29,155 nucleotides of DNA from NCBI GenBank assembly GCA_001179505.1, contig CDMY01000699.1, positions 1 to 29,155 of the forward strand. Reading direction: 5' to 3'. Source of the DNA: Vitrella brassicaformis CCMP3155 (taxonomy: Eukaryota; Protista; Chromerida). Of this stretch, positions 13,894 through 27,067 are shown piece by piece (within the stretch, counting starts at the first letter, position 1; every line of letters begins with the position of its first letter). Below the pieces are notes generated by a model. The model did not search any database, was not told the origin of the DNA, and saw only the letters and a list, made by a program, of their open reading frames with translations. The position numbers and the translations under genes are program-made.

Positions 13894-16349
13894 ATGAGGG
13901 GTTTTTCTGAGCTCCTATGCCTCATCGGATGCCTTACTATCCTTCGAGTGCAAGCAAGCACAGAGTGCACGGCGGCTTGCAAAGAGGCAGTGCCGTACGC
14001 AAAGGAAATGGACAAGGACGGAAATGGGCTGCTGTGCTGGGAGGAGGTGCAGGACTATCTGCAACGTAAGTCCCGAATGGTGCAGCTTTGGCCTTTACTG
14101 TCGCTTTCCTTTATTGTCGCTCCCTTATTGCGCAGCCGCCGAGGACTTGGCGAAGACGGCCCACGTCCAGGAACTCATTCGCCAAGTGGAAGTCATGCTC
14201 AAGGAGACCGCCACGGCCGCCACAGTGGAGCAAGCCGACATCTTGATCAAGAAGTACGCGCAAAGTGTCGCCGTGCGAGCAGAGAGACACACTAATTGAA
14301 CGCTGCCTTAACTTCAGACCCAGTGCAAAGAATCTGACGGAGGAGGCTGAGAAGGTGCTTGACGCTCCAGAGATCATGGAATTGGTGGATTCCGCATCCG
14401 CTGTCTTGAAGAGACAGTCAGCGACCAATTTGACAGTCGAAGTACGCAAGTACCTCCACGGTGAAAGCACGGGCCAAGACGTCGAGAACAGCTATGACAT
14501 TCTCATGGCGGAGGAAGCGGGCAAAAACCTTTCGTCCGCCTTCGAAGCCCTGATCGACAGCGAGACGGTCGACAACTTTGTGAAAATTGCCGAGGACATC
14601 ATCGAGAACCCTTCGGCTGAGCTCGAGAACGCGACGCAGAGCCTGGAAAGCAAGGCTGACAAAGTCACGTATGCGAACTCGACGGATGCTGTCGGTGACG
14701 GCTGGGAACACGTCGTCAAAGAGGAGAAGAAACTGCGCACCGGCATCTACAAGGAAATAGAGGACCTCGGAAATGATCTAGATAACGAGACTGCGGTCAG
14801 AGACGGTGTTCTGGTGGCAGACGAGCTTCTGACGAGGGAGAACATCAACGACCTGATCGATCATGCCAAGGGGCACCTGCGCGACAGCAGACTCAAGGAC
14901 AATATCCTGCAGAATTACTATGGTACGCGGTCCGGACATGATCCTGCGGTATCCTGCGGATGACATGATCCTCCCTCTGTTCCTCGTCCTGCAGAGGACT
15001 TGAAGAAAGACGCTGCGAATGCGCGCCTCCAAGACAGCAAGCCTGTGGGTGACTACGCCAAAATCTATTACGACGACATCAAAAACAAGTATAGTCTGGT
15101 GTCGGGGTGCCTTCTTGTGAGCGACGCAATCAAGGGCCTTGGGTAGGCGGCGGATGAATCCGATTTGGCTCCGACTACCTTTCGTGTGATTGCAGCGCGA
15201 CCACCTCCGATTGCACGGACTGTCCCGACTTTCCTCTCTATTCCAAGGAGGGCACGAAGGTGCAGACACAGATACACAAATACAGCAGTCATTTGAGGGT
15301 CCGGGCTGATGATTGCAGCCAACGCCTCCTCCGCCTCGTGCGGACTGGGACGGGATACAGAAAGGATTTGACCAGGTAAGCAGGCTCAGATCTCTGTGTG
15401 TGCTTACCTAAAGTGCCATGTCTCTACTGCCATCCTGTATATTCTATCACAGTTTCGTGACCAGGGGGAGCACCTTCCCTCCGAGGCTGACGGGTGCAAG
15501 CAGGAGGCGGGAGTGCTCAAGTGCGAAGAGGCCACGGCACCAACCTTCGTCAAGCTGTCACCCAACTCTCCGGTGCAGAACGTGAAGGGTACCTCACAGC
15601 CGGATGAGATTATCGGGAGTACATCCGATAACGAGCTCGACGGAGGAGAGGGCACTGATATTCTCAGTCGGTGACAGACACAGGCACTCAGAGCCGTCGA
15701 TTAAGATATCATGCCTCTCTCTGTATGTGTTCCCTGTCCGCCGGCTGAGCAGATGGCGGCGGAGGCAATGATAAGCTTACCGGTATGTGATAGAGGAATG
15801 GCGGCGAGCGTCGCCTGTTACGTGTCTGTGGGCACGTGTACACTGTTCAGGAGGAGCAGGCAATGACCTGTTTGTGATGAGCGACCTGCCAGGCACATCC
15901 ACGGTCACTGAATTCACACAGCGCACCTGCGACCAATCACATATCCTGTCATGTGTTAATTAGGTCACCGACTTCACCCCTGGCACGGACCAGCTTGACC
16001 TCCGCGGCTTCCAGATCTCTGACCCTAATGACCTGGATTTCGCGGAAGGCAGTGTGATCATCAAGATAGACGAGGAGCACCAGATGGTCCTAGAGGGTGT
16101 CTCCCGTGATCAGCTGTCACTTGGTGACTACATGCTGGTGGCAGCGGACCCCACGGCCAGGTAGGCACACTTAGATGCAGATCGGCTCTCGCTTCTCTAA
16201 ACTGCCATGTGTCTGCTTAACCTGATCTCAGCACACAGGCACCTGAAGAATCGAAGGACAGTGGTGCACACGCACACCAGAGTGCTACAGAGGTGGCTGT
16301 GATCACAGCAGCCACCTGGCTGCTCGCAGCCCACTACATAGCTGCCTGA
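13894..16349 (+). CDS. Secreted, possibly GPI-anchored Ca2+-binding protein: signal peptide + EF-hand + helical region + RTX (GGxGxD) repeats + T1SS-target-like beta domain
   Basis: The N-terminus is MRGFSELLCLIGCLTILRVQA. An EF-hand loop DKDGNGLLCWEE lies at 14011-14046. Splicing at 15666/15753, 15782/15851 and 15903/15964 gives GTSQPDEIIGSTSDNELDGGEGTDILNGGGGNDKLTGGAGNDLFVMSDLPGTSTVTDFTPGTDQLDLRGF...MVLEGVSRDQLSLGDY. The C-terminus is SKDSGAHAHQSATEVAVITAATWLLAAHYIAA*. Confidence 0.8.
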
Positions 16350-18947: not shown

Positions 18948-21900
18948 ATGGCGAGTGCTGCTTTCGAGAGTCAAGCTGCAGACCTTCCCGACTCTGAGGA
19001 GAATCACAATGGTGTGACGTCATCTGCCTCCACGGCTTCCACCCCGCCCAATCACGACCACACCGATGGGCCAGGGCCTCGTGTTGTGGATGCCCTCGTG
19101 GACCTTGACCACAAGGACCAGCAGCACCGCTTCCCCCCCTCCGCGCACCAGTGGAGGACACGACGCCGAGCCTACTCAGTAAGAAAGTGATTCTTGTGCT
19201 TGCAAACACTTGTCTGCCTGGTCTCATGCGTTTAGCTCACTGATGCCGATCGAGAGCGAATGGCCGAGGTCCGGGCTGCACAGTGGCAGCAGGCGTACAT
19301 GGAGGAAAACAAGCATCTCGCCCTACTACCTGCTTTCAACCGCCTGAGCACCATCGCCATGATGGTCGAGGCCAAGGAGGGCACCGGCAGACACCGCAAA
19401 CGGCCCAAATGGTCATCCAAAACCGAGTATATGCTCAGCTGCATTTCGTTGTCAGTGAAGAAGCCGACCAAAGAAGAACAAACAAGGCGAGAGAGGTGAC
19501 TGCAATGTGTCCCGTCCCATGTGTTTGTTGTGTATAGTGCTGTCGGTCTTGGCAATTTGTGGCGATTCCCGTACCTCTGTTATGAGGTATCGTTACGGAC
19601 TGCGAGCGGGATAAGGATCGCGTCTTTGTGATTCTGTCTGTCTGCGTGTATATTTGCCTTTTTTTGATGATCCCATCACAGAATGGCGGGGGTGCCTTCT
19701 TGGTGCCGTACTTCGTCGCGCTGCTGCTCCTGGGTATGCCCATGTTCCTGCTCGAGCTCGCGATGGGGCAGAAGCTACAGATGGGGCATGTCCGTGTAAG
19801 CTTTGCAAAGCATTGGATCGGTTCAAAGCTGACATCTGCTGCTTTCTGCAGGTGTGGCGAAGTGTCCACTCGAAGCTGAGTGGCCTGGGTGTGGCCTCTG
19901 CGATCCTTAGTGGCATCTGCGCGCTCTACTACAAGTGATTCATACACAACAAGGAATGCTGAAACGCACATGTCCCACATGGCGAATTATCGTGTCGTTT
20001 CAGCATCATAATCACTTGGGCGATTTACTTTTTTATCCACTCCTTTTCCCCCGTGCTGCCATGGACTGAAGGGGGCGTGGACGCAGCGGATTCTGCGAAA
20101 AAGTCAGAAGAACGGGTCCACGACCAAAGAGGAAGCGCCGTCAGTGCACATGTCGTTTGATAGGTTCTGGCTAGAGGAGGCACTTCGACAAGCACCAGAC
20201 ATGAATGGAGGAGGTGGCTGGGGCATCTCTCCGCTGATGATTGCATGCCTCACAATCGCGTGGCTGATGGTTTACTTCTGCATATTCCGCGGCATCAGCA
20301 GCACAGGCAAGGTGGTCTACTTCACTGCCCTCTTTCCCTACGTTGTCTTGGCCATCCTCTTCGTGAGGGGCGTCACACTGCCTGGGGCCGTGGAAGGGAT
20401 CAAGTAAGGAAGGAAGGGCCCAACAAAGCAAATACACAAGACAAACGCGCCAAACATTTGTACTAATGCGACGGCTTCAGGTACTACCTGAAACCCGATC
20501 TCACCCGTCTGGCGAACTTTCGTGTGTGGAGTATAGCCGGCAGTCAGATCTTCTTTTCCATCGGTATCTCGTGGGGGTCGCTGATCAACTTTGCGTCATT
20601 CAACAGTCAGGTGCGTCAGGTAGAGATATCGCGTCTCACTGGTGCGACCTGTTGGTTTGTTCTGTGTTCCAGAAAAATAACATCTTCATGGACACGTTGA
20701 TCGTCTGTATCGTCAATTGCGGCACATCGCTTTTTGCGGGGTTCGTCGTCTTTTCTGTGTTGGGATACATGGCCTTCAAGGTGACCAGGAAGACCGCAGC
20801 TGAGCACAGCTGCCATCACCTGCTGATTCGTGTATGGTAGACTGGGCTGCCGATTGACGAGGTGGCTCGTGCGGGCAGCGGCTTGGCGTTCGTGGTGTAC
20901 CCCGCTGGCCTGGGCACCATGAACCACGCCTTCGTCTTCTCCATCCTCTTCTTCCTGATGTAGGTGATTATCTGCAGACGACACGCAAGGCTGTCCTGAT
21001 TTCCTCTCATGTGTGTGCAGGTTAATCTGCTTGGTGAGGATATGATACCAGCTTGACGTTGAAAAATATTGCACTGAGAAGTATTGCATTTGCACCAAGG
21101 GCTTGGGTTCTGAGTTCTGTATGGTGGAGGTGGTGATGACCAGCATCGTCGAAGCCAGCCTCTTTCAGGTGGATGAAGGCCTCATTTGACAGCACGCAAC
21201 AAGTAGATGAGATCCTTGCACACCACTTTCTTCAATCAGGGAATCAAGAAATGGAAAGTGGCTGCGGCGATATGCGCCGTCATGTGGGCCGTCGGTTTGC
21301 TCCTGATAAGCCCTGTTGGGAAGTATTGGGTCGACCTGCTGGATGACTTTACTGGCGCATTTGCCTTGTTTGTCGTCGCATTGGTCGAGGTGCTGGCGGT
21401 CGTGCACATCTACAAACTGGGTCGATTCAGCGAGGACGTAGCCGAAATGACAGGTGAGCTCACATCCATGGGACATCGACGCAGCCACATCAACCCATTC
21501 CTCTGTCGTGTGTCCGTTGAGTGCAGGCATGCGCATAAGCAAGGCCATGAGGTTGGTCTACCGTTACGTCACTCCTATCGGCATAGCCATCCTCCTCCTT
21601 TCCTCGGTGATGGTGTTTGCCGTGGAGAGACGCAGCAACTTTCAACACTCACGGCAGCCTTCGGTGGGCAAAGGCTGCGTCGGCACCTGTGGCGCCGACG
21701 CAAACCCGCCACGCGGCGTGTGTGAGACGCGCAATATGTTCTGTCGGTGCAAGCGCGGGTGGGGCGGCGCCGACTGCACGACGAAGATCGACACGCGAGT
21801 GTATTCCTGCCCAGAGGACTGTAATGGACAGGGCGTGTGCGACGAGACCACTCAGCAATGTACGTGCTTTGCTGAGTTCGAGGGCGAATCGTGCAGAGGA

Positions 21901-22402
21901 GACAAGTACGCAAAGGGGTTTCCGCCATGGGCACTATTCGTCGGATTCATGGTACAACGCACACAAGTGCACAGCGTACACTATAGCCACTCGTTTCTGG
22001 TTTCTTTGGTTTCAGGTCGCCATAGTGTCGGTTCTGCCGATCCCTCTTGTGGCGTTCTGGAAGCACTTGAGGAAGCGGGTGAAGCAGAAGATCGACGAGA
22101 ACCCTGAGGCCACCCAGACGGCCATGTACCCGTCGTCCTCGCGGCCGCCCGCCACACCATCCAACTCCACTGAGGACAACGCATCAAGCGACAGTGACGA
22201 TGATGACGATGGTCCGCCGCCGTCAGCGCTGACAAGCCTGCTGTCCTGCATGCCTGGCAAGCGCAAGACCGGCCGTCAGTCGGCCAGGGGGGTGGAGATG
22301 AGTCAACAGAATGGCAGGGGTGGTGGGAGGGAAGATAGGAAGCATCTGCCGTCATCACAGCCCCAGTTTGATGACGACGACAGTGACGATGAACGGTTCT
22401 GA
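18948..22402 (+). CDS. SLC6/NSS (sodium:neurotransmitter symporter family) transporter with two EGF-like domains in the last extracellular loop
   Basis: Spliced hallmarks: [17 protein letters not shown]|[16 protein letters not shown]|[54 protein letters not shown] and LICL|GLGSEF. A Cys-rich insert at 21676-21894 precedes the [13 protein letters not shown]12. An acidic tail ends at 22402. Confidence 0.93.
21676..21894 (+). other. Two tandem EGF-like (tenascin/EGF_2-type) domains within SLC6
   Basis: [34 protein letters not shown] and [29 protein letters not shown]. Each has 6 Cys with the C-x-C-x2-G-aromatic-x-G-x2-C ending (F-A-E-F-E-G variant in the second). Confidence 0.88.
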
Positions 22403-22602: not shown

Positions 22603-25600
22603 TCATTCCTCTGGCTGCTCTATGGCATCCTCCAAGTTGCCGCCTCCTCTCTCGGCAGTGTACTCGACGTCCACCATGGCGTCCGATGCCTCCCTTGACT
22701 TCTGTCGCTTCCGTTTGGCCTCATTGCCCTGGTTTGCGTCGATATCCTGCTCGGCTGCTGCCTCTGCTTCAGCGCTCTGCTCCTGCTCGGCGAGGGCACT
22801 GCGGTCACATCAACAGGGCATGCACACAGACGTGCCTGCAGGTATAGCAGATCCACCTTCGTCCTTTCCTGGCCGCACCTTTCCGTCAGGCGTTTCCACA
22901 CATCGTCAGGTTCGATTTCCTCTGCACCGTCGCGCAGGTCGTTCCCCTCATCCTCTTCGCGGAACCGCTGAAGCACCGCCTGAATGTCAAACCTGTCCAC
23001 GAGACAACAGAGGTGGCATGATGGACCTGCTTACACTGTCTCTGGTGGTGTGATTGATGGGGGGTGGCTTACTCTTTGCGTGCTTCTTCGAGTATCTTAT
23101 CGTCCTCCCCCTCATCGAGCTGGCGGAGAAAACTCACATCAGACGGCCGCCAGGGCGCATCCTGATGATGCCACAGAGAGGGAACAAGGCAGAGGGAAGG
23201 AGCAAAGAAAGGAAAGCTCATGAGCGGCCGGCCACGCACATCCGTCCGTCTTTGCCTTACCGGTGTGCGTTTGTACCAGCCCCTGATGTACTTTGCGAGG
23301 AACTTCTCGCTGGGTGGTGTGACGCGCAGGAACCTGCCCTGGTTCTGCTGCGTCCTGATGAATGTCCGCCAGTGTGGGTTGATGACGAGCGTCTCGGCGT
23401 TGGCCACGACCCACAAGTTGAAGCGCGCGCGAGTGAGGGCGACGTTCATGCGCCGCGTGTCGGCCACGAAGCCGATGGTCTTCTTCTTGCTGTGCCCGCG
23501 GACGGCGCTGAAGATCACGCAGTCTTTCTCGCGACCCTGACAGGCAGGCAGGCAGACAGACAGAGGGAATGCGGGAGAGGGGGGCGAGAGGCCATCCATG
23601 GATAGTGCATCTTTTGAGTGTGGGATTTCCCTTACTTGGAAGCCGTCCACAGTGTTGACCTCAATCGGCAGGGGCGCAGTCGAACGAGTCTGACACGTTG
23701 TACAGACATGCAGCGGCGACCATTCGATGTGCCGTTCCGGATTGGCTGTTCATCTGTTTACCCCCAGGACATCTCTGAATTTCTGTCTGATGAGCCGCAC
23801 TTGCTCGGCGTAGGGCGTCACAACAGCCAGCTTCTTTCGCCAATCGAACTCGGATATCTGAAAAGGAAACGACACATCTACATGTATGCCGTCATCTGTT
23901 GCTTTCCGCCTTGCTGACCATCTGCGTGAGGGTGAGAAATATCTGCACGACGAAATCAGCTTCCTCCGGATTGACAAGAGATGACCCCTCAGCCTGACGA
24001 CCACACCCATATGCACGCAACAGCACATGCGCACAACACGCAGGGCTCCCTTTTCCGTCTGTGTGTCTGACGTGCCTGTTCCCTGGTCTTGACGTGGAAG
24101 AACACAACGGGCTGCAGGGCTGGCACACAGTACCAGGGAGGAGCCTTGACCAGCTCGTCGATGTTGGGCGCGTTGTTCAGCTGCTCGTCGTAAAACCTGT
24201 CACACGGCAAGGGAAGGCACGTGTGCGGAATGCGTTGAGTCACTGGTGCGCGAGTTCTCACTCTTTGGATGGGAATTCGGCAATGGTGGGGTGCATCCGG
24301 TACTGCACAGACAGCAATGTCACAGGATAGTGGCCCTCGAGCAACCGCTGAAACAGCGACCGGTTGTATCCCTGTTGTTGCCACACAACGTACATACACG
24401 CATACGTTTGCTGTTCGCTCGGAGCTCCTATGATTTGGTGTTTTGCGGCAATTCTGTTACGTGTTCTTCGCATATCTTGGAGAAGACTGTGGCGGGGAGC
24501 TGCCTGTGATCGCCCACCAAGATGACCCGCCTGGCGCCGAGCTTGAATGGAATCAACACAGACATCTCCACACCCTGCATGCACATCCATCCACTCCAGA
24601 CAACACCACACACATGGGAGTGCACGCCTTGCATGAGCGTGTTTCTCTCCTCTGCCTTGCTTGCCTGTGAGGCCTCGTCGATGATGACCGTGTCGAATCC
24701 GTCTGCGAAGGAGGTCAGATCTCGACCGCCGCAGACAGACAGGGTGGCACACACCACACGCGCCTCAGACAGGATGCCCATACGCACAGCCTGGTAAGAC
24801 AAAAGACGAAAGATAGTCCGGTATGAGGCGGGTCCGTGTATGTGTGTTGTCGCAGCTTTGCCCACATCTCTCTGGGAGAATGATGTGTCCGCTTTGGCCT
24901 TGAGTCGCAGGTTGGTCAGATGCTCAAGCCCATGCTCAAGAATGTCCGGATGGCTGTTCGGACCCACACGAACCACCTGCACTGACAGATCCAAGCACCT
25001 CCGTGTGCCGTCCCATCTCATCTTCTCCCTAGTCTTCTCTTGGCTCACCTGTGGTATGACTCGTTTGCCCTCTTTGTTGTACACGCCCTTGTGCACCAGC
25101 CGCCTCACGATCTCGTCGATCGCCGCATTGGACGGGGCACACACCAACACCTTCCTGAGGGGAGAGAGAGGGAAAGGACGGTTCTGCATGCATGAAGCAG
25201 ACACCGTCTGAGCTCTTATTTTGGCGTACTTTGGTTGTGATCCTTCGCTTATCTTTGACATGTTGATGACGCGATCCGTCTGTTGAGCCGTGGGATACTG
25301 GAAGCATACACACGTATGGCAGCAACTCTCAGCCGGGGCTTTCTCGACTGGTGTTTACCTGGTTGGGCTTTGCGAGGTCTTCAGGCCGCCACGTGACCTT
25401 GTCGTACCTTCATAGACAAGGGGATGTACGGTCACGAGCCTTCATCCCTCCCGCTGTCTACCCCTTACCCCCTCACCAGCACTTGTAGTCCCGTTCGAAC
25501 AGCCACGGCTGTGCCCTTCGCAGCCGCCGACATTCCTCCTTCCTCACCACATCAGGATCGTCAGGGCGCAGGACAGACACCAGCTTGCCTGTGTCGAGCC

Positions 25601-27067
25601 ACTCTATGTGCCGCAACGCCCCACGGATGCGCCTCGGAGGGCTGGTGGACGAGCGGTGGGGGGCTGCCTTGTCCTGAGAAGAAGGGGCGTCCGTCGACTG
25701 AGGAGCAAGCAAGGAGGGATGGAGTGCACTGTCCACCGAGGCAGTGCTAGGTGTCGTACCTTCTTCCCCTGTCGTGTCTGGTTGGCACCGCTCCTCCGCA
25801 CAGATGCGTGCAAGATGACGCTGAGCACGCCCAAGATGGTTGTCGTCTTGCCAGTACCTAAACAGAAACTCGACAACACAAATCACGTTCTTTCGGTGTT
25901 GCCCTGCTCCGTCTAACCAGGGGGGCCCTGCACGAGGGTGATGCCCTTGGTCCTCATGCACGCCTGGATGGCCTCGTACTGCGATTCATTGTACTCCTCA
26001 CGAAGCGTGTCCAGCAGGCGCCCTGGAACTACAAGCCGCAGGTCGTCCTCATCACTTGCGGCAGCCCCGTTCGGTCCAGCTTTCCTCTTATCATCCTCTG
26101 CTGGTGTCTGCCCGTCTGGCGGGATCTCGTCGAGGGAACGTGGGTTGAGGACGAAGTCCTTCAGAAGCAGGTCCGGGACGGCACAAAGGGCCTAAGGGAG
26201 AAGACACCAAATGGGAAAGAAGCGCCTCTTGACGAGCGACGCATCTAGGGAAGTGTCCTTGTACTTCCCACCTGGAACTCTCTGTGTATGGTGGTGAGTC
26301 CCGTGATGCGGGTGACGTGCCATGTCTTGAATCCGTTGATGGTCTCCGCCACAATGTGCCCCCTGGGCGTGTCGCAGTCCAGACACACCTTGACCGTCAG
26401 CACCTCCCGCACAGAGCTCTCCACCATACCCAGCGTGTGAATCTTGGCAAGGTCATCGAGGTCGGGGTTCGCCGCTGCCTCATGATTCTCCTTGGGGTCA
26501 GGGGGAGCGGACGGGGGGGATTGGGAGGGAGGGGCGAAGTTGGCCGTTGGATGCTGAGAAAGGAGCACTAGGTCGGCGTGGCTGTACATGAGATGCGACC
26601 GGAAGGGACGCTCCAGCTCCAGGCGAACGAAGTCGCCCACCATCTGCGCCTTAGTCTGGACGGACATGCAACCAATAACATACATGCATGGCTTCGCCCG
26701 TTCTGTGAGTAGGGACCTGTTTGCATGGTTCGGTAGTGACAGCCTCGAGTGTCTTGGCTCGCTCGATAGTCGCCTTGGTCTCGACGAGGAACAGAGGCAG
26801 GAACACGTCGCTGTACTCCTTGGCACTGCCGAAGTGGACGGGCACAGACTTGAGGTCATCAATGGGGCTCTTGGTAGAGGTCTCCTGCTGCGCCTCAGCA
26901 TCCACTTGCTTGTCGGCGTCTGCGGCGCTCTCTCTCTTTCTGGACGCCCGTTGCCTCTGTTGCATGAGTATATGGTCATCCACGATGTCTTCGTAGTAGT
27001 CCCATTTGAGCACATTCTGGTGCAGCTCGTCTAAGATCTGCTCAGTGTTCCCTGCTGAATCCACCAT
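22603..27067 (-). CDS. Sen1/senataxin-like SF1B RNA/DNA helicase (Upf1-like; helicase core only)
   Basis: Spliced motifs: VLKWDYY, EYSDVFLPLFLVETKA, YNESQYEAI, ITLVQGPPG|TGKTTTI (Walker A), VLVCAPSNAAIDEI, VVCATLS, FDTVIIDEASQ|GVEMSVLIP, LVGDHRQLPATVFS, SLFQRL, LSVQYRMHPTIAEFPS, TVDGFQ|GREKDCVIFSAVR and GFVADTRRMNVALTRAR. The acidic C-terminus ends ...EQPEE* at 22603. An in-frame upstream ATG also exists at 27193. Confidence 0.93.

Follow-up and report, generated by a model that had tools for sequence, protein, structure and literature searches.

Results

An SLC6 gene annotated as two proteins

The window analysed here comprises 29,155 nucleotides of contig CDMY01000699.1 (assembly GCA_001179505.1) from the chromerid Vitrella brassicaformis CCMP3155 and carries, at positions 18948–22402 of the + strand, a gene of the SLC6 transporter family whose product has an insert in the loop between transmembrane helices (TM) 11 and 12, predicted to consist of two EGF-like modules. 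The gene has 15 exons (2496 nt, 831 codons) and 14 introns of 56–95 nt each, every one of them GT..AG, and its frame, which starts with the ATG at 18948 and closes with the stop codon 22400–22402, is open across all 15 exons, with each exon in the phase set by its predecessors; boundaries and phase were worked out exon by exon, by arithmetic. The locus was found in eight public sequencing runs. Relative to the genome, contigs from three studies (X1, X7 and X8) lack 13 short segments: 12 of the 13 joints correspond to GT..AG introns and the thirteenth to two GT..AG introns flanking a micro-exon of 13 nt, one joint being missing from X1. The run type given in the public records is a guess only; X1, X7 and X8 must derive from spliced RNA, because contigs that lack introns at canonical splice sites have no other source. 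All three retain exon 14, in which the insert is encoded, as a single piece (21524–21950) between GT..AG joints. A fourth run (X6) contributes unspliced, colinear genomic pieces covering 21314–21693, and in X3–X5 all sampled words of the stretch were present. We conclude that the locus is a single gene, that it is expressed, and that its predicted product is a complete transporter of the SLC6/NSS family with 12 TM helices. A preliminary description of the window had proposed that the insert lies in one uninterrupted exon which is spliced into the SLC6 mRNA, and the three contigs, in which exon 14 is whole, bear this out.

The public annotation divides the gene into two proteins, CEM30635.1 (P0001 in our set; 470 aa, named 'Transporter') and CEM30637.1 (P0267, A0A0G4GKW5; 357 aa), the latter named 'EGF-like domain-containing protein' and automatically tagged SNF and EGF_Teneurin. 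In the first model the donor of the micro-exon was missed, and the reading frame runs on into the intron that follows and then stops; the second model begins at an internal Met at 21121. Both are connected by the spliced contigs X1, X7 and X8, and the public gene model is hereby corrected: CEM30635.1 and CEM30637.1 are halves of one gene. Because the gene was split at the micro-exon (21021–21033), the architecture of the whole protein has been masked in databases.

The transporter core

Outside exon 14, matches to SNF (PF00209) were obtained with Pfam in seven exons, with expect values (E) between 2.4e-6 and 1.8e-24 for exons 3, 4, 7, 8, 9 and 13. P0267 matched SNF positions 367–493 (E 5e-23), and P0001 is tagged PF00209. 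The best solved match of P0001 was GlyT1 (322 bits), and BGT1, CreaT and GAT1 scored almost the same, at most a few bits apart. As read from the exon translations and the alignment with GlyT1, the motifs GLGN-WRFPY of TM1, QIFFS of TM6 and N-x-x-T-S of TM7 are kept, and TM8 carries GLGSEF, where many SLC6 members have GLDSQF. In the SLC6 family these motifs belong to the ion and substrate sites, and we take their residues to be those of the Na1, Na2 and Cl− sites. At the TM1 site where monoamine carriers have an Asp, the Vitrella protein has Gly, and its substrate is therefore likely to be an amino acid or a carboxylate and not a monoamine. Overall, the core looks like that of a working Na+/Cl−-dependent amino-acid or osmolyte transporter.

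For structural comparison only the TM8–12 part was folded, and the N-terminal half was placed by sequence alone. In the AlphaFold2 model of residues 1–275 of the C-terminal half-protein, TM9, TM10, TM11 (93–127) and TM12 (221–256) are confident helices, and TM8–12 superpose on residues 426–589 of hDAT with a Z-score of 10.2 and a root-mean-square deviation of 2.8 over 162 aligned residues. The predicted cytosolic tails measure ~140 aa at the N-terminus and ~110 aa at the acidic C-terminus. The C-terminal tail (22061–22399) is strongly basic at first and then Ser/Asp-rich, with two runs of 4–5 Asp, and ends in D-E-R-F; it gave no Pfam match.

Position of the insert

Exon 14 encodes, in order, TM11, a linker of 17 residues, a six-Cys module, a linker of 10 residues, a second six-Cys module, six further residues and the G-F-P-P-W motif that opens TM12. 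The start of the exon aligns to the TM11 positions of a profile of 81 relatives, which superseded a first alignment of 133 full-length matches that was too ragged. The segment that begins where TM11 ends and reaches into TM12 has 25–26 residues in 100 of the 114 relatives that cover both helices, and the maximum is 49 (+24); the same segment in Vitrella has ~117 residues, about 92 above the 25-residue norm. The structural alignments agree with this. Against human SIT1 (8p2w), alignment of the query breaks off at residue 111 and resumes at 208, whereas the SIT1 chain passes from 521 to 540 (96 vs. 18 residues), and against hDAT ~91 model residues, which are the insert, stayed unaligned. The insert lies in the TM11–TM12 loop, extracellular loop (EL) 6, and makes it ~78–92 residues longer than in solved SLC6 structures.

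The preliminary description had located the insert at 21676–21894, and these coordinates are exact, the codon of the first Cys lying at 21676–21678 and that of the twelfth at 21892–21894 in the frame of exon 14. Its estimate of about 75 extra residues agrees well with the 73 residues from Cys 1 to Cys 12 and falls short of the net gain of the loop, which is larger (~78–92). The TM11 and TM12 strings that it quoted are both present, and TM12 is interrupted by a 64-nt GT..AG intron at the very place it had marked.

In every solved SLC6 structure EL6 faces the outside, and by homology the insert is extracellular. In the Vitrella protein five of the 20 residues following TM12 are K/R, and this strongly basic stretch is consistent with a cytosolic C-terminus. 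In an oxidising compartment EGF domains pair their cysteines 1–3, 2–4 and 5–6. We infer for the two modules that they carry disulfide bonds and are exposed at the cell's exterior.

Identity of the two modules

The cysteines are spaced C-x3-C-x10-C-x6-C-x-C-x8-C in module 1 and C-x3-C-x5-C-x6-C-x-C-x8-C in module 2. When exon 14 was scanned with Pfam, EGF_Teneurin (PF23106) matched in two stretches with E 7.7e-7 and 29.5 bits (cut-off 24.3), and EGF_2 (PF07974) with E 2.5e-5 and 25.0 bits (cut-off 22.1). Column by column, all 12 Cys and the G-W-G-DC and C-P motifs stand in register with 18 environmental eukaryotic tandem EGF pairs. By visual reading of that alignment, the linker between the modules has 10–11 residues in the transporters of Vitrella and of the gregarine described below, compared with ~3–8 in the 18 pairs. 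Tandem repeats of the EGF_2 and tenascin/teneurin kind thus share with the insert the Cys spacing and the GW-G-DC and CP--C motifs; the Vitrella insert differs from them in having two modules only, a long linker and both ends held in a membrane protein.

An AlphaFold2 model of the insert by itself, made with the alignment to the 18 pairs, reached a mean pLDDT (per-residue confidence) of 75.5, with 87–91 in module 2, and both modules show short strands that pair up. Every one of the best 50 matches that Foldseek listed from the PDB was an EGF protein, among them SCARF1, the integrin beta I-EGF domains, WIF-1, Notch, DLL and Jagged, at scores that were weak (best E 2.3e-3, TM-scores ~0.3), as expected for small flexible tandems. 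Cysteine pattern and profile matches identify the insert as two predicted EGF modules of the tenascin/teneurin type. Together with the SNF matches and the structure alignments, this upholds the earlier picture of an otherwise canonical SLC6 protein with two six-Cys EGF modules in its TM11–TM12 loop.

Inspection of the insert by eye revealed no N-glycosylation sequons, no consensus sites for O-fucose or O-glucose and no signature of calcium-binding EGF domains. An RGD tripeptide directly after Cys 12 (21895–21903) was considered and set aside; the Polyplicarium protein has A-G-Q at this place, and the tripeptide is probably due to chance.

An ortholog in a gregarine

The closest relative of P0001 was a transcript of the eugregarine Polyplicarium translucidae. 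A 622-aa isoform from the same 90% cluster (P0268; Polyplicarium DN3298_c0_g1_i2.p1 in EukProt) is a second carrier of the insert, with TM11 and TM12 separated by two EGF modules and Pfam matches to SNF and to EGF_TEN/EGF_2. It is 43% identical to the Vitrella protein over 262 aa. All 12 Cys align (12/12), the Polyplicarium insert having one deletion of three residues and one of two within the modules, and identity from Cys 1 to Cys 12 is 41% (29% without the cysteines), compared with 30% for the adjoining TM11 segment and 40% for the adjoining TM12 segment. Because the ortholog has 12 aligned Cys and 41% identity in the insert, the insertion appears to be old and under constraint. The two proteins have in common the architecture, the 12 Cys, a short EL2 and their sister position in the tree; unlike the Vitrella protein, P0268 is N-terminally incomplete (it begins in TM2), lacks the RGD and is known from a transcriptome alone.

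In a tree of 51 rows, from which the insert columns had been left out, the Vitrella and Polyplicarium proteins are sisters with a support of 100 in the approximate likelihood ratio test (SH-aLRT). Both fall within a protist clade, apart from animal SLC6 proteins, that also holds the Logan transcript P0014, Prymnesium and three environmental sequences; no EGF insert was found in these protist-clade neighbours of the two carriers. The alignment and the tree indicate that the gene from which the Vitrella transporter and its Polyplicarium ortholog descend already had the insert, and that the 12 Cys and several non-Cys positions have been kept since.

A truncated Polyplicarium isoform (P0004, i10.p2) leaves i2.p1 within TM11 and ends 10 residues further on; intron retention or use of another 3′ end is the probable cause, and the resulting transporter stops short of the EGF insert. 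An intron position seemingly common to this isoform and Vitrella was dropped, P0004 diverging from P0268 later, inside TM11.

Distribution of the architecture

Among 268 fetched proteins the six-Cys EGF pattern occurred in two, those of Vitrella and Polyplicarium, and in none of the other 266, in searches that were not aimed at Chromera, colpodellids or other apicomplexans and did not include an InterPro architecture query. The 120 best matches of a word search carried the PF00209 tag alone, and the ten long matches that were scanned with Pfam gave SNF alone. Feature searches of the ESM Atlas with exon 14 and with P0268 returned no cluster that combines SNF with EGF, the clusters being EGF-only or SNF-only and all scores below 0.9. 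A scan of JGI metagenomes, seeded with the two most conserved motifs of the insert, gave 15 loci with no SNF part, which were rejected as multi-EGF repeat proteins after local tblastn. A word search with exon 14 in a window of 78–248 aa, which shuts out the 357-aa model and full-length proteins, gave no match, and a search with a 217-aa open reading frame across exon 14 gave the Vitrella 357-aa model alone. The representative search, which gave P0001 as a 100% match along with the Polyplicarium cluster, used the conserved exon 7 as its query, because one with two EGF modules was likely to be swamped by multi-EGF proteins, and it is therefore not a direct search for the architecture.

The known distribution of the layout is one chromerid and one gregarine. 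Literature searches found no published description of an SLC6–EGF layout or of its two accessions. The view taken in the preliminary description, that no SLC6–EGF fusion had been described, is correct as far as this literature goes; it is qualified by the half-model CEM30637.1, which already bears the automatic SNF and EGF_Teneurin tags, and by the gregarine ortholog, which shares the layout. That description had also named exon skipping, a cytosolic loop and a widespread architecture as grounds for giving up its proposal; exon 14 is not skipped in the spliced contigs, the loop is extracellular by homology, and the architecture occurred in two of the 268 fetched proteins.

Features of the locus and neighbouring genes

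The coordinates of exons and protein features are collected in Table 1.

Table 1. Exons and encoded features of the Vitrella brassicaformis SLC6 gene (positions in the window)
Feature	Position	Strand	Evidence
Exon 1: start codon and cytosolic N-terminal tail; matches P0001 start	18948..19178	+	Contig joints, phase
Exon 2: N-terminal tail to TM1 start	19236..19450	+	Contig joints, phase
Exon 3: TM1 motif GLGN-WRFPY	19538..19586	+	SNF, E 2.4e-6
Exon 4: TM2	19682..19795	+	SNF, E 2.2e-11
Exon 5: TM3, first part	19852..19934	+	Contig joints, phase
Exon 6: TM3 end, start of short Cys-free EL2	20004..20102	+	Contig joints, phase
Exon 7: remaining EL2, TM4, TM5	20164..20403	+	SNF, E 1.8e-24
Exon 8: TM6, QIFFS motif	20481..20610	+	SNF match
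Exon 9: TM7, N-C-G-T-S	20673..20780	+	SNF, E 2.2e-11
Exon 10: EL4, TM8 start	20841..20959	+	Contig joints, phase
Exon 11: 13-nt micro-exon within TM8	21021..21033	+	Ten letters between joint 20961/21099 in X1, X7, X8; AG/GT flanks
Exon 12: remaining TM8 (GLGSEF)	21100..21168	+	Phase
Exon 13: TM9, TM10, intracellular loop 5 (IL5)	21240..21453	+	SNF, E 3.3e-11; model helices 20–39, 41–87
Exon 14: TM11, linker, EGF 1, linker, EGF 2, first half of TM12	21527..21951	+	Contigs, Pfam, phase
TM11 hydrophobic core	21553..21624	+	Profile of 81 relatives, positions 505–523; SIT1 to residue 521; in model helix 93–127
Predicted EGF-like module 1, Cys 1–6	21676..21777	+	Second EGF_Teneurin stretch; EGF_TEN 63–124; pLDDT ~82
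Inter-EGF linker, 10 residues	21778..21807	+	Alignment
Predicted EGF-like module 2, Cys 7–12	21808..21894	+	EGF_Teneurin and EGF_2 above cut-offs; pLDDT 87–91
TM12 first half, from PPW motif	21925..21951	+	SIT1 from residue 540; model helix 221–256
Intron 14, 64 nt, GT..AG, interrupts TM12	21952..22015	+	Contig joints
Exon 15: TM12 second half (22016–22060), basic stretch, acidic Ser/Asp-rich cytosolic tail, stop	22016..22402	+	Phase

Upstream, an annotated gene on the same strand (14008–16349, 553 aa) has a weak match to HemolysinCabind, an RTX repeat. The convergent neighbour on the − strand (22603–27045) encodes a large AAA_11/AAA_12 helicase of the UPF1/SEN1-like kind, and its annotated end is ~200 nt away from the stop of the transporter. 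Contig X7 (6012 nt) extends well beyond 22700, so the 3′ ends of the transporter and helicase may overlap in transcripts.

Discussion

In its SNF profile and motifs the Vitrella transporter resembles GlyT1/SLC6A9, BGT1, CreaT and GAT1 and, for the C-terminal half, SIT1 and PROT. It differs from these amino-acid and osmolyte transporters in an EL6 that is longer by ~92 residues with its two EGF modules, and in an EL2 that is half the usual length and Cys-free. In B0AT1 and SIT1, surface expression is controlled by an associated folded extracellular partner, ACE2 or collectrin (PDB 6m17, 8p2w). That partner is a separate, single-pass protein which is not of the EGF type and is not joined to EL6, whereas the Vitrella module is covalent, and the resemblance would be one of functional analogy.

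The preliminary description had suggested an adhesion or ligand module, a replacement for an accessory subunit or part of a transceptor as roles of the insert, and sequence gives no ranking among these proposals. We hypothesize, at about even odds (roughly 0.5), that the protein is a working SLC6 transporter whose EGF modules form a hairpin that serves as a protein-docking or stabilising ectodomain. The transport core would operate as in other SLC6 proteins. With both ends of the insert presumably tied to neighbouring helices, and with an inter-EGF linker that is unusually long, the modules would probably fold back on each other in an up-and-down hairpin that would project from the outer face by a few nanometres; a doubly anchored insert needs such a fold-back and the linker of 10–11 residues fits it, which is a geometric argument. 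In SLC6 proteins the outer vestibule is rimmed by EL6 together with the adjoining EL2 and EL4 (PMC6742698), and the hairpin would stand beside this EL2/EL4/EL6 rim, outside the substrate path. There it could act as a permanent ectodomain that docks or stabilises, by binding to a partner or to the matrix of wall or pellicle, or by self-association of the transporter at the TM11/12 edge.

Several observations weigh against this interpretation. Module 1 by itself lies under the Pfam cut-offs, appearing as the second EGF_Teneurin stretch and in a sub-threshold EGF_TEN match. Inside the transporter model the insert has a pLDDT below 50, which makes any placement relative to the vestibule tentative. 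With two members only, constraint on the insert is deduced from a single pairwise comparison, and the Polyplicarium sequence, taken from a transcriptome under a EukProt species name, may stem from another organism in the sample. Rare variants are lost from contigs, so low-level skipping of exon 14 could escape notice.

A tentative alternative, which we consider possible but not probable, is that the hairpin is a structural cap that stands in for the long, disulfide-bonded and glycosylated EL2 by which animal SLC6 proteins are stabilised; it would cover the face made by EL2, EL4 and EL6, with no external partner involved, and can be seen as a special form of the stabilising role. EL2 has 33 aa in Vitrella (coding positions 20080–20250) and 32 aa in Polyplicarium and is Cys-free in both, compared with a median of 67 aa among 153 other relatives, 147 of which have at least two Cys in this loop. 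EL2 packs on EL6 and EL4, and its excessive shortening abolishes transport by dDAT (PMC6742698). The nearest EGF-less relative, P0014 (a contig of Logan run SRR30176336), likewise combines a short Cys-free EL2 with an EL6 extension of 15 residues and two Cys. However, the correlation comprises three related sequences only, and P0250 (jgi), from the same protist clade, has a Cys-free EL2 of 33 aa but did not figure among those relatives whose EL6 segment is lengthened, so that a short EL2 does not demand an insert in EL6. Considered by itself, the EL6 extension of P0014 may form a small hairpin, closed by a disulfide, where the two carriers have their EGF modules, and it could represent the precursor of a larger insert or what is left of one.

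In place of docking or stabilisation at the cell surface, the modules might be a sorting handle, bound by a lumenal escorter or cargo receptor that directs the transporter to a surface domain or to microneme-like organelles, a route taken by EGF-bearing membrane proteins of apicomplexans. We regard this as unlikely. The restriction of the known carriers to a chromerid and a gregarine would suit such a function, as would the EGF, TSP1, Sushi and vWA proteins of microneme-like architecture that have expanded in chromerids (PMC4501334), and the apicomplexan cysteine-repeat modular proteins (CRMPs), from the same wider lineage, are multi-pass proteins whose conserved core joins two EGF-like domains to transmembrane helices (PMC9815656). 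The CRMPs, however, are not LeuT-fold solute carriers; their likeness to the Vitrella protein, and with it the analogy, is one of domain type alone, and no solute carrier is known to be sorted in this way.

It is rather doubtful that the protein is a transceptor or ligand-gated transporter, in which a ligand or partner on the EGF hairpin would alter the packing of EL4 and EL6 and thereby gate transport or signal the nutrient state. EL6 contacts EL4, which moves in gating, and is part of the allosteric vestibule site of SERT (PMC6742698), and the long cytosolic tails could couple such a protein to signalling; yet this reasoning is purely positional, the EGF_2 modules have no known ligand motif, and the RGD is not kept in Polyplicarium. 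We have equally low expectations of a broader version, an ancient receptor–transporter hybrid predating the chromerid–gregarine split, whose hairpin would bind a ligand, a wall component or a host molecule and gate or report on the vestibule via EL4 and EL2. If true, this would be the first LeuT-fold solute carrier with a built-in ligand-binding ectodomain.

That the insert is an artefact of faulty assembly or of a mis-spliced model, or else a neutral passenger that is tolerated and serves no function, is highly improbable: the annotation of the locus was indeed wrong, with the gene split in two, and there are two carriers only, but this explanation is largely refuted and essentially excluded, as genomic contigs of other runs are colinear, spliced contigs of three studies keep exon 14, and an ortholog of another lineage keeps the 12 Cys at an identity (41%) as high as that of the flanking TM segments.

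SLC6 transporters rank with the most thoroughly studied membrane proteins. The Vitrella transporter and its gregarine ortholog suggest that EL6 tolerates a large, folded and disulfide-rich module, and they are a natural experiment in decorating LeuT-fold proteins on their outer side. The insert may be a covalent counterpart of the separate ectodomain partners of B0AT1 and SIT1. With it, a nutrient transporter would be added to the EGF-bearing surface proteins that are common to chromerids and apicomplexans.

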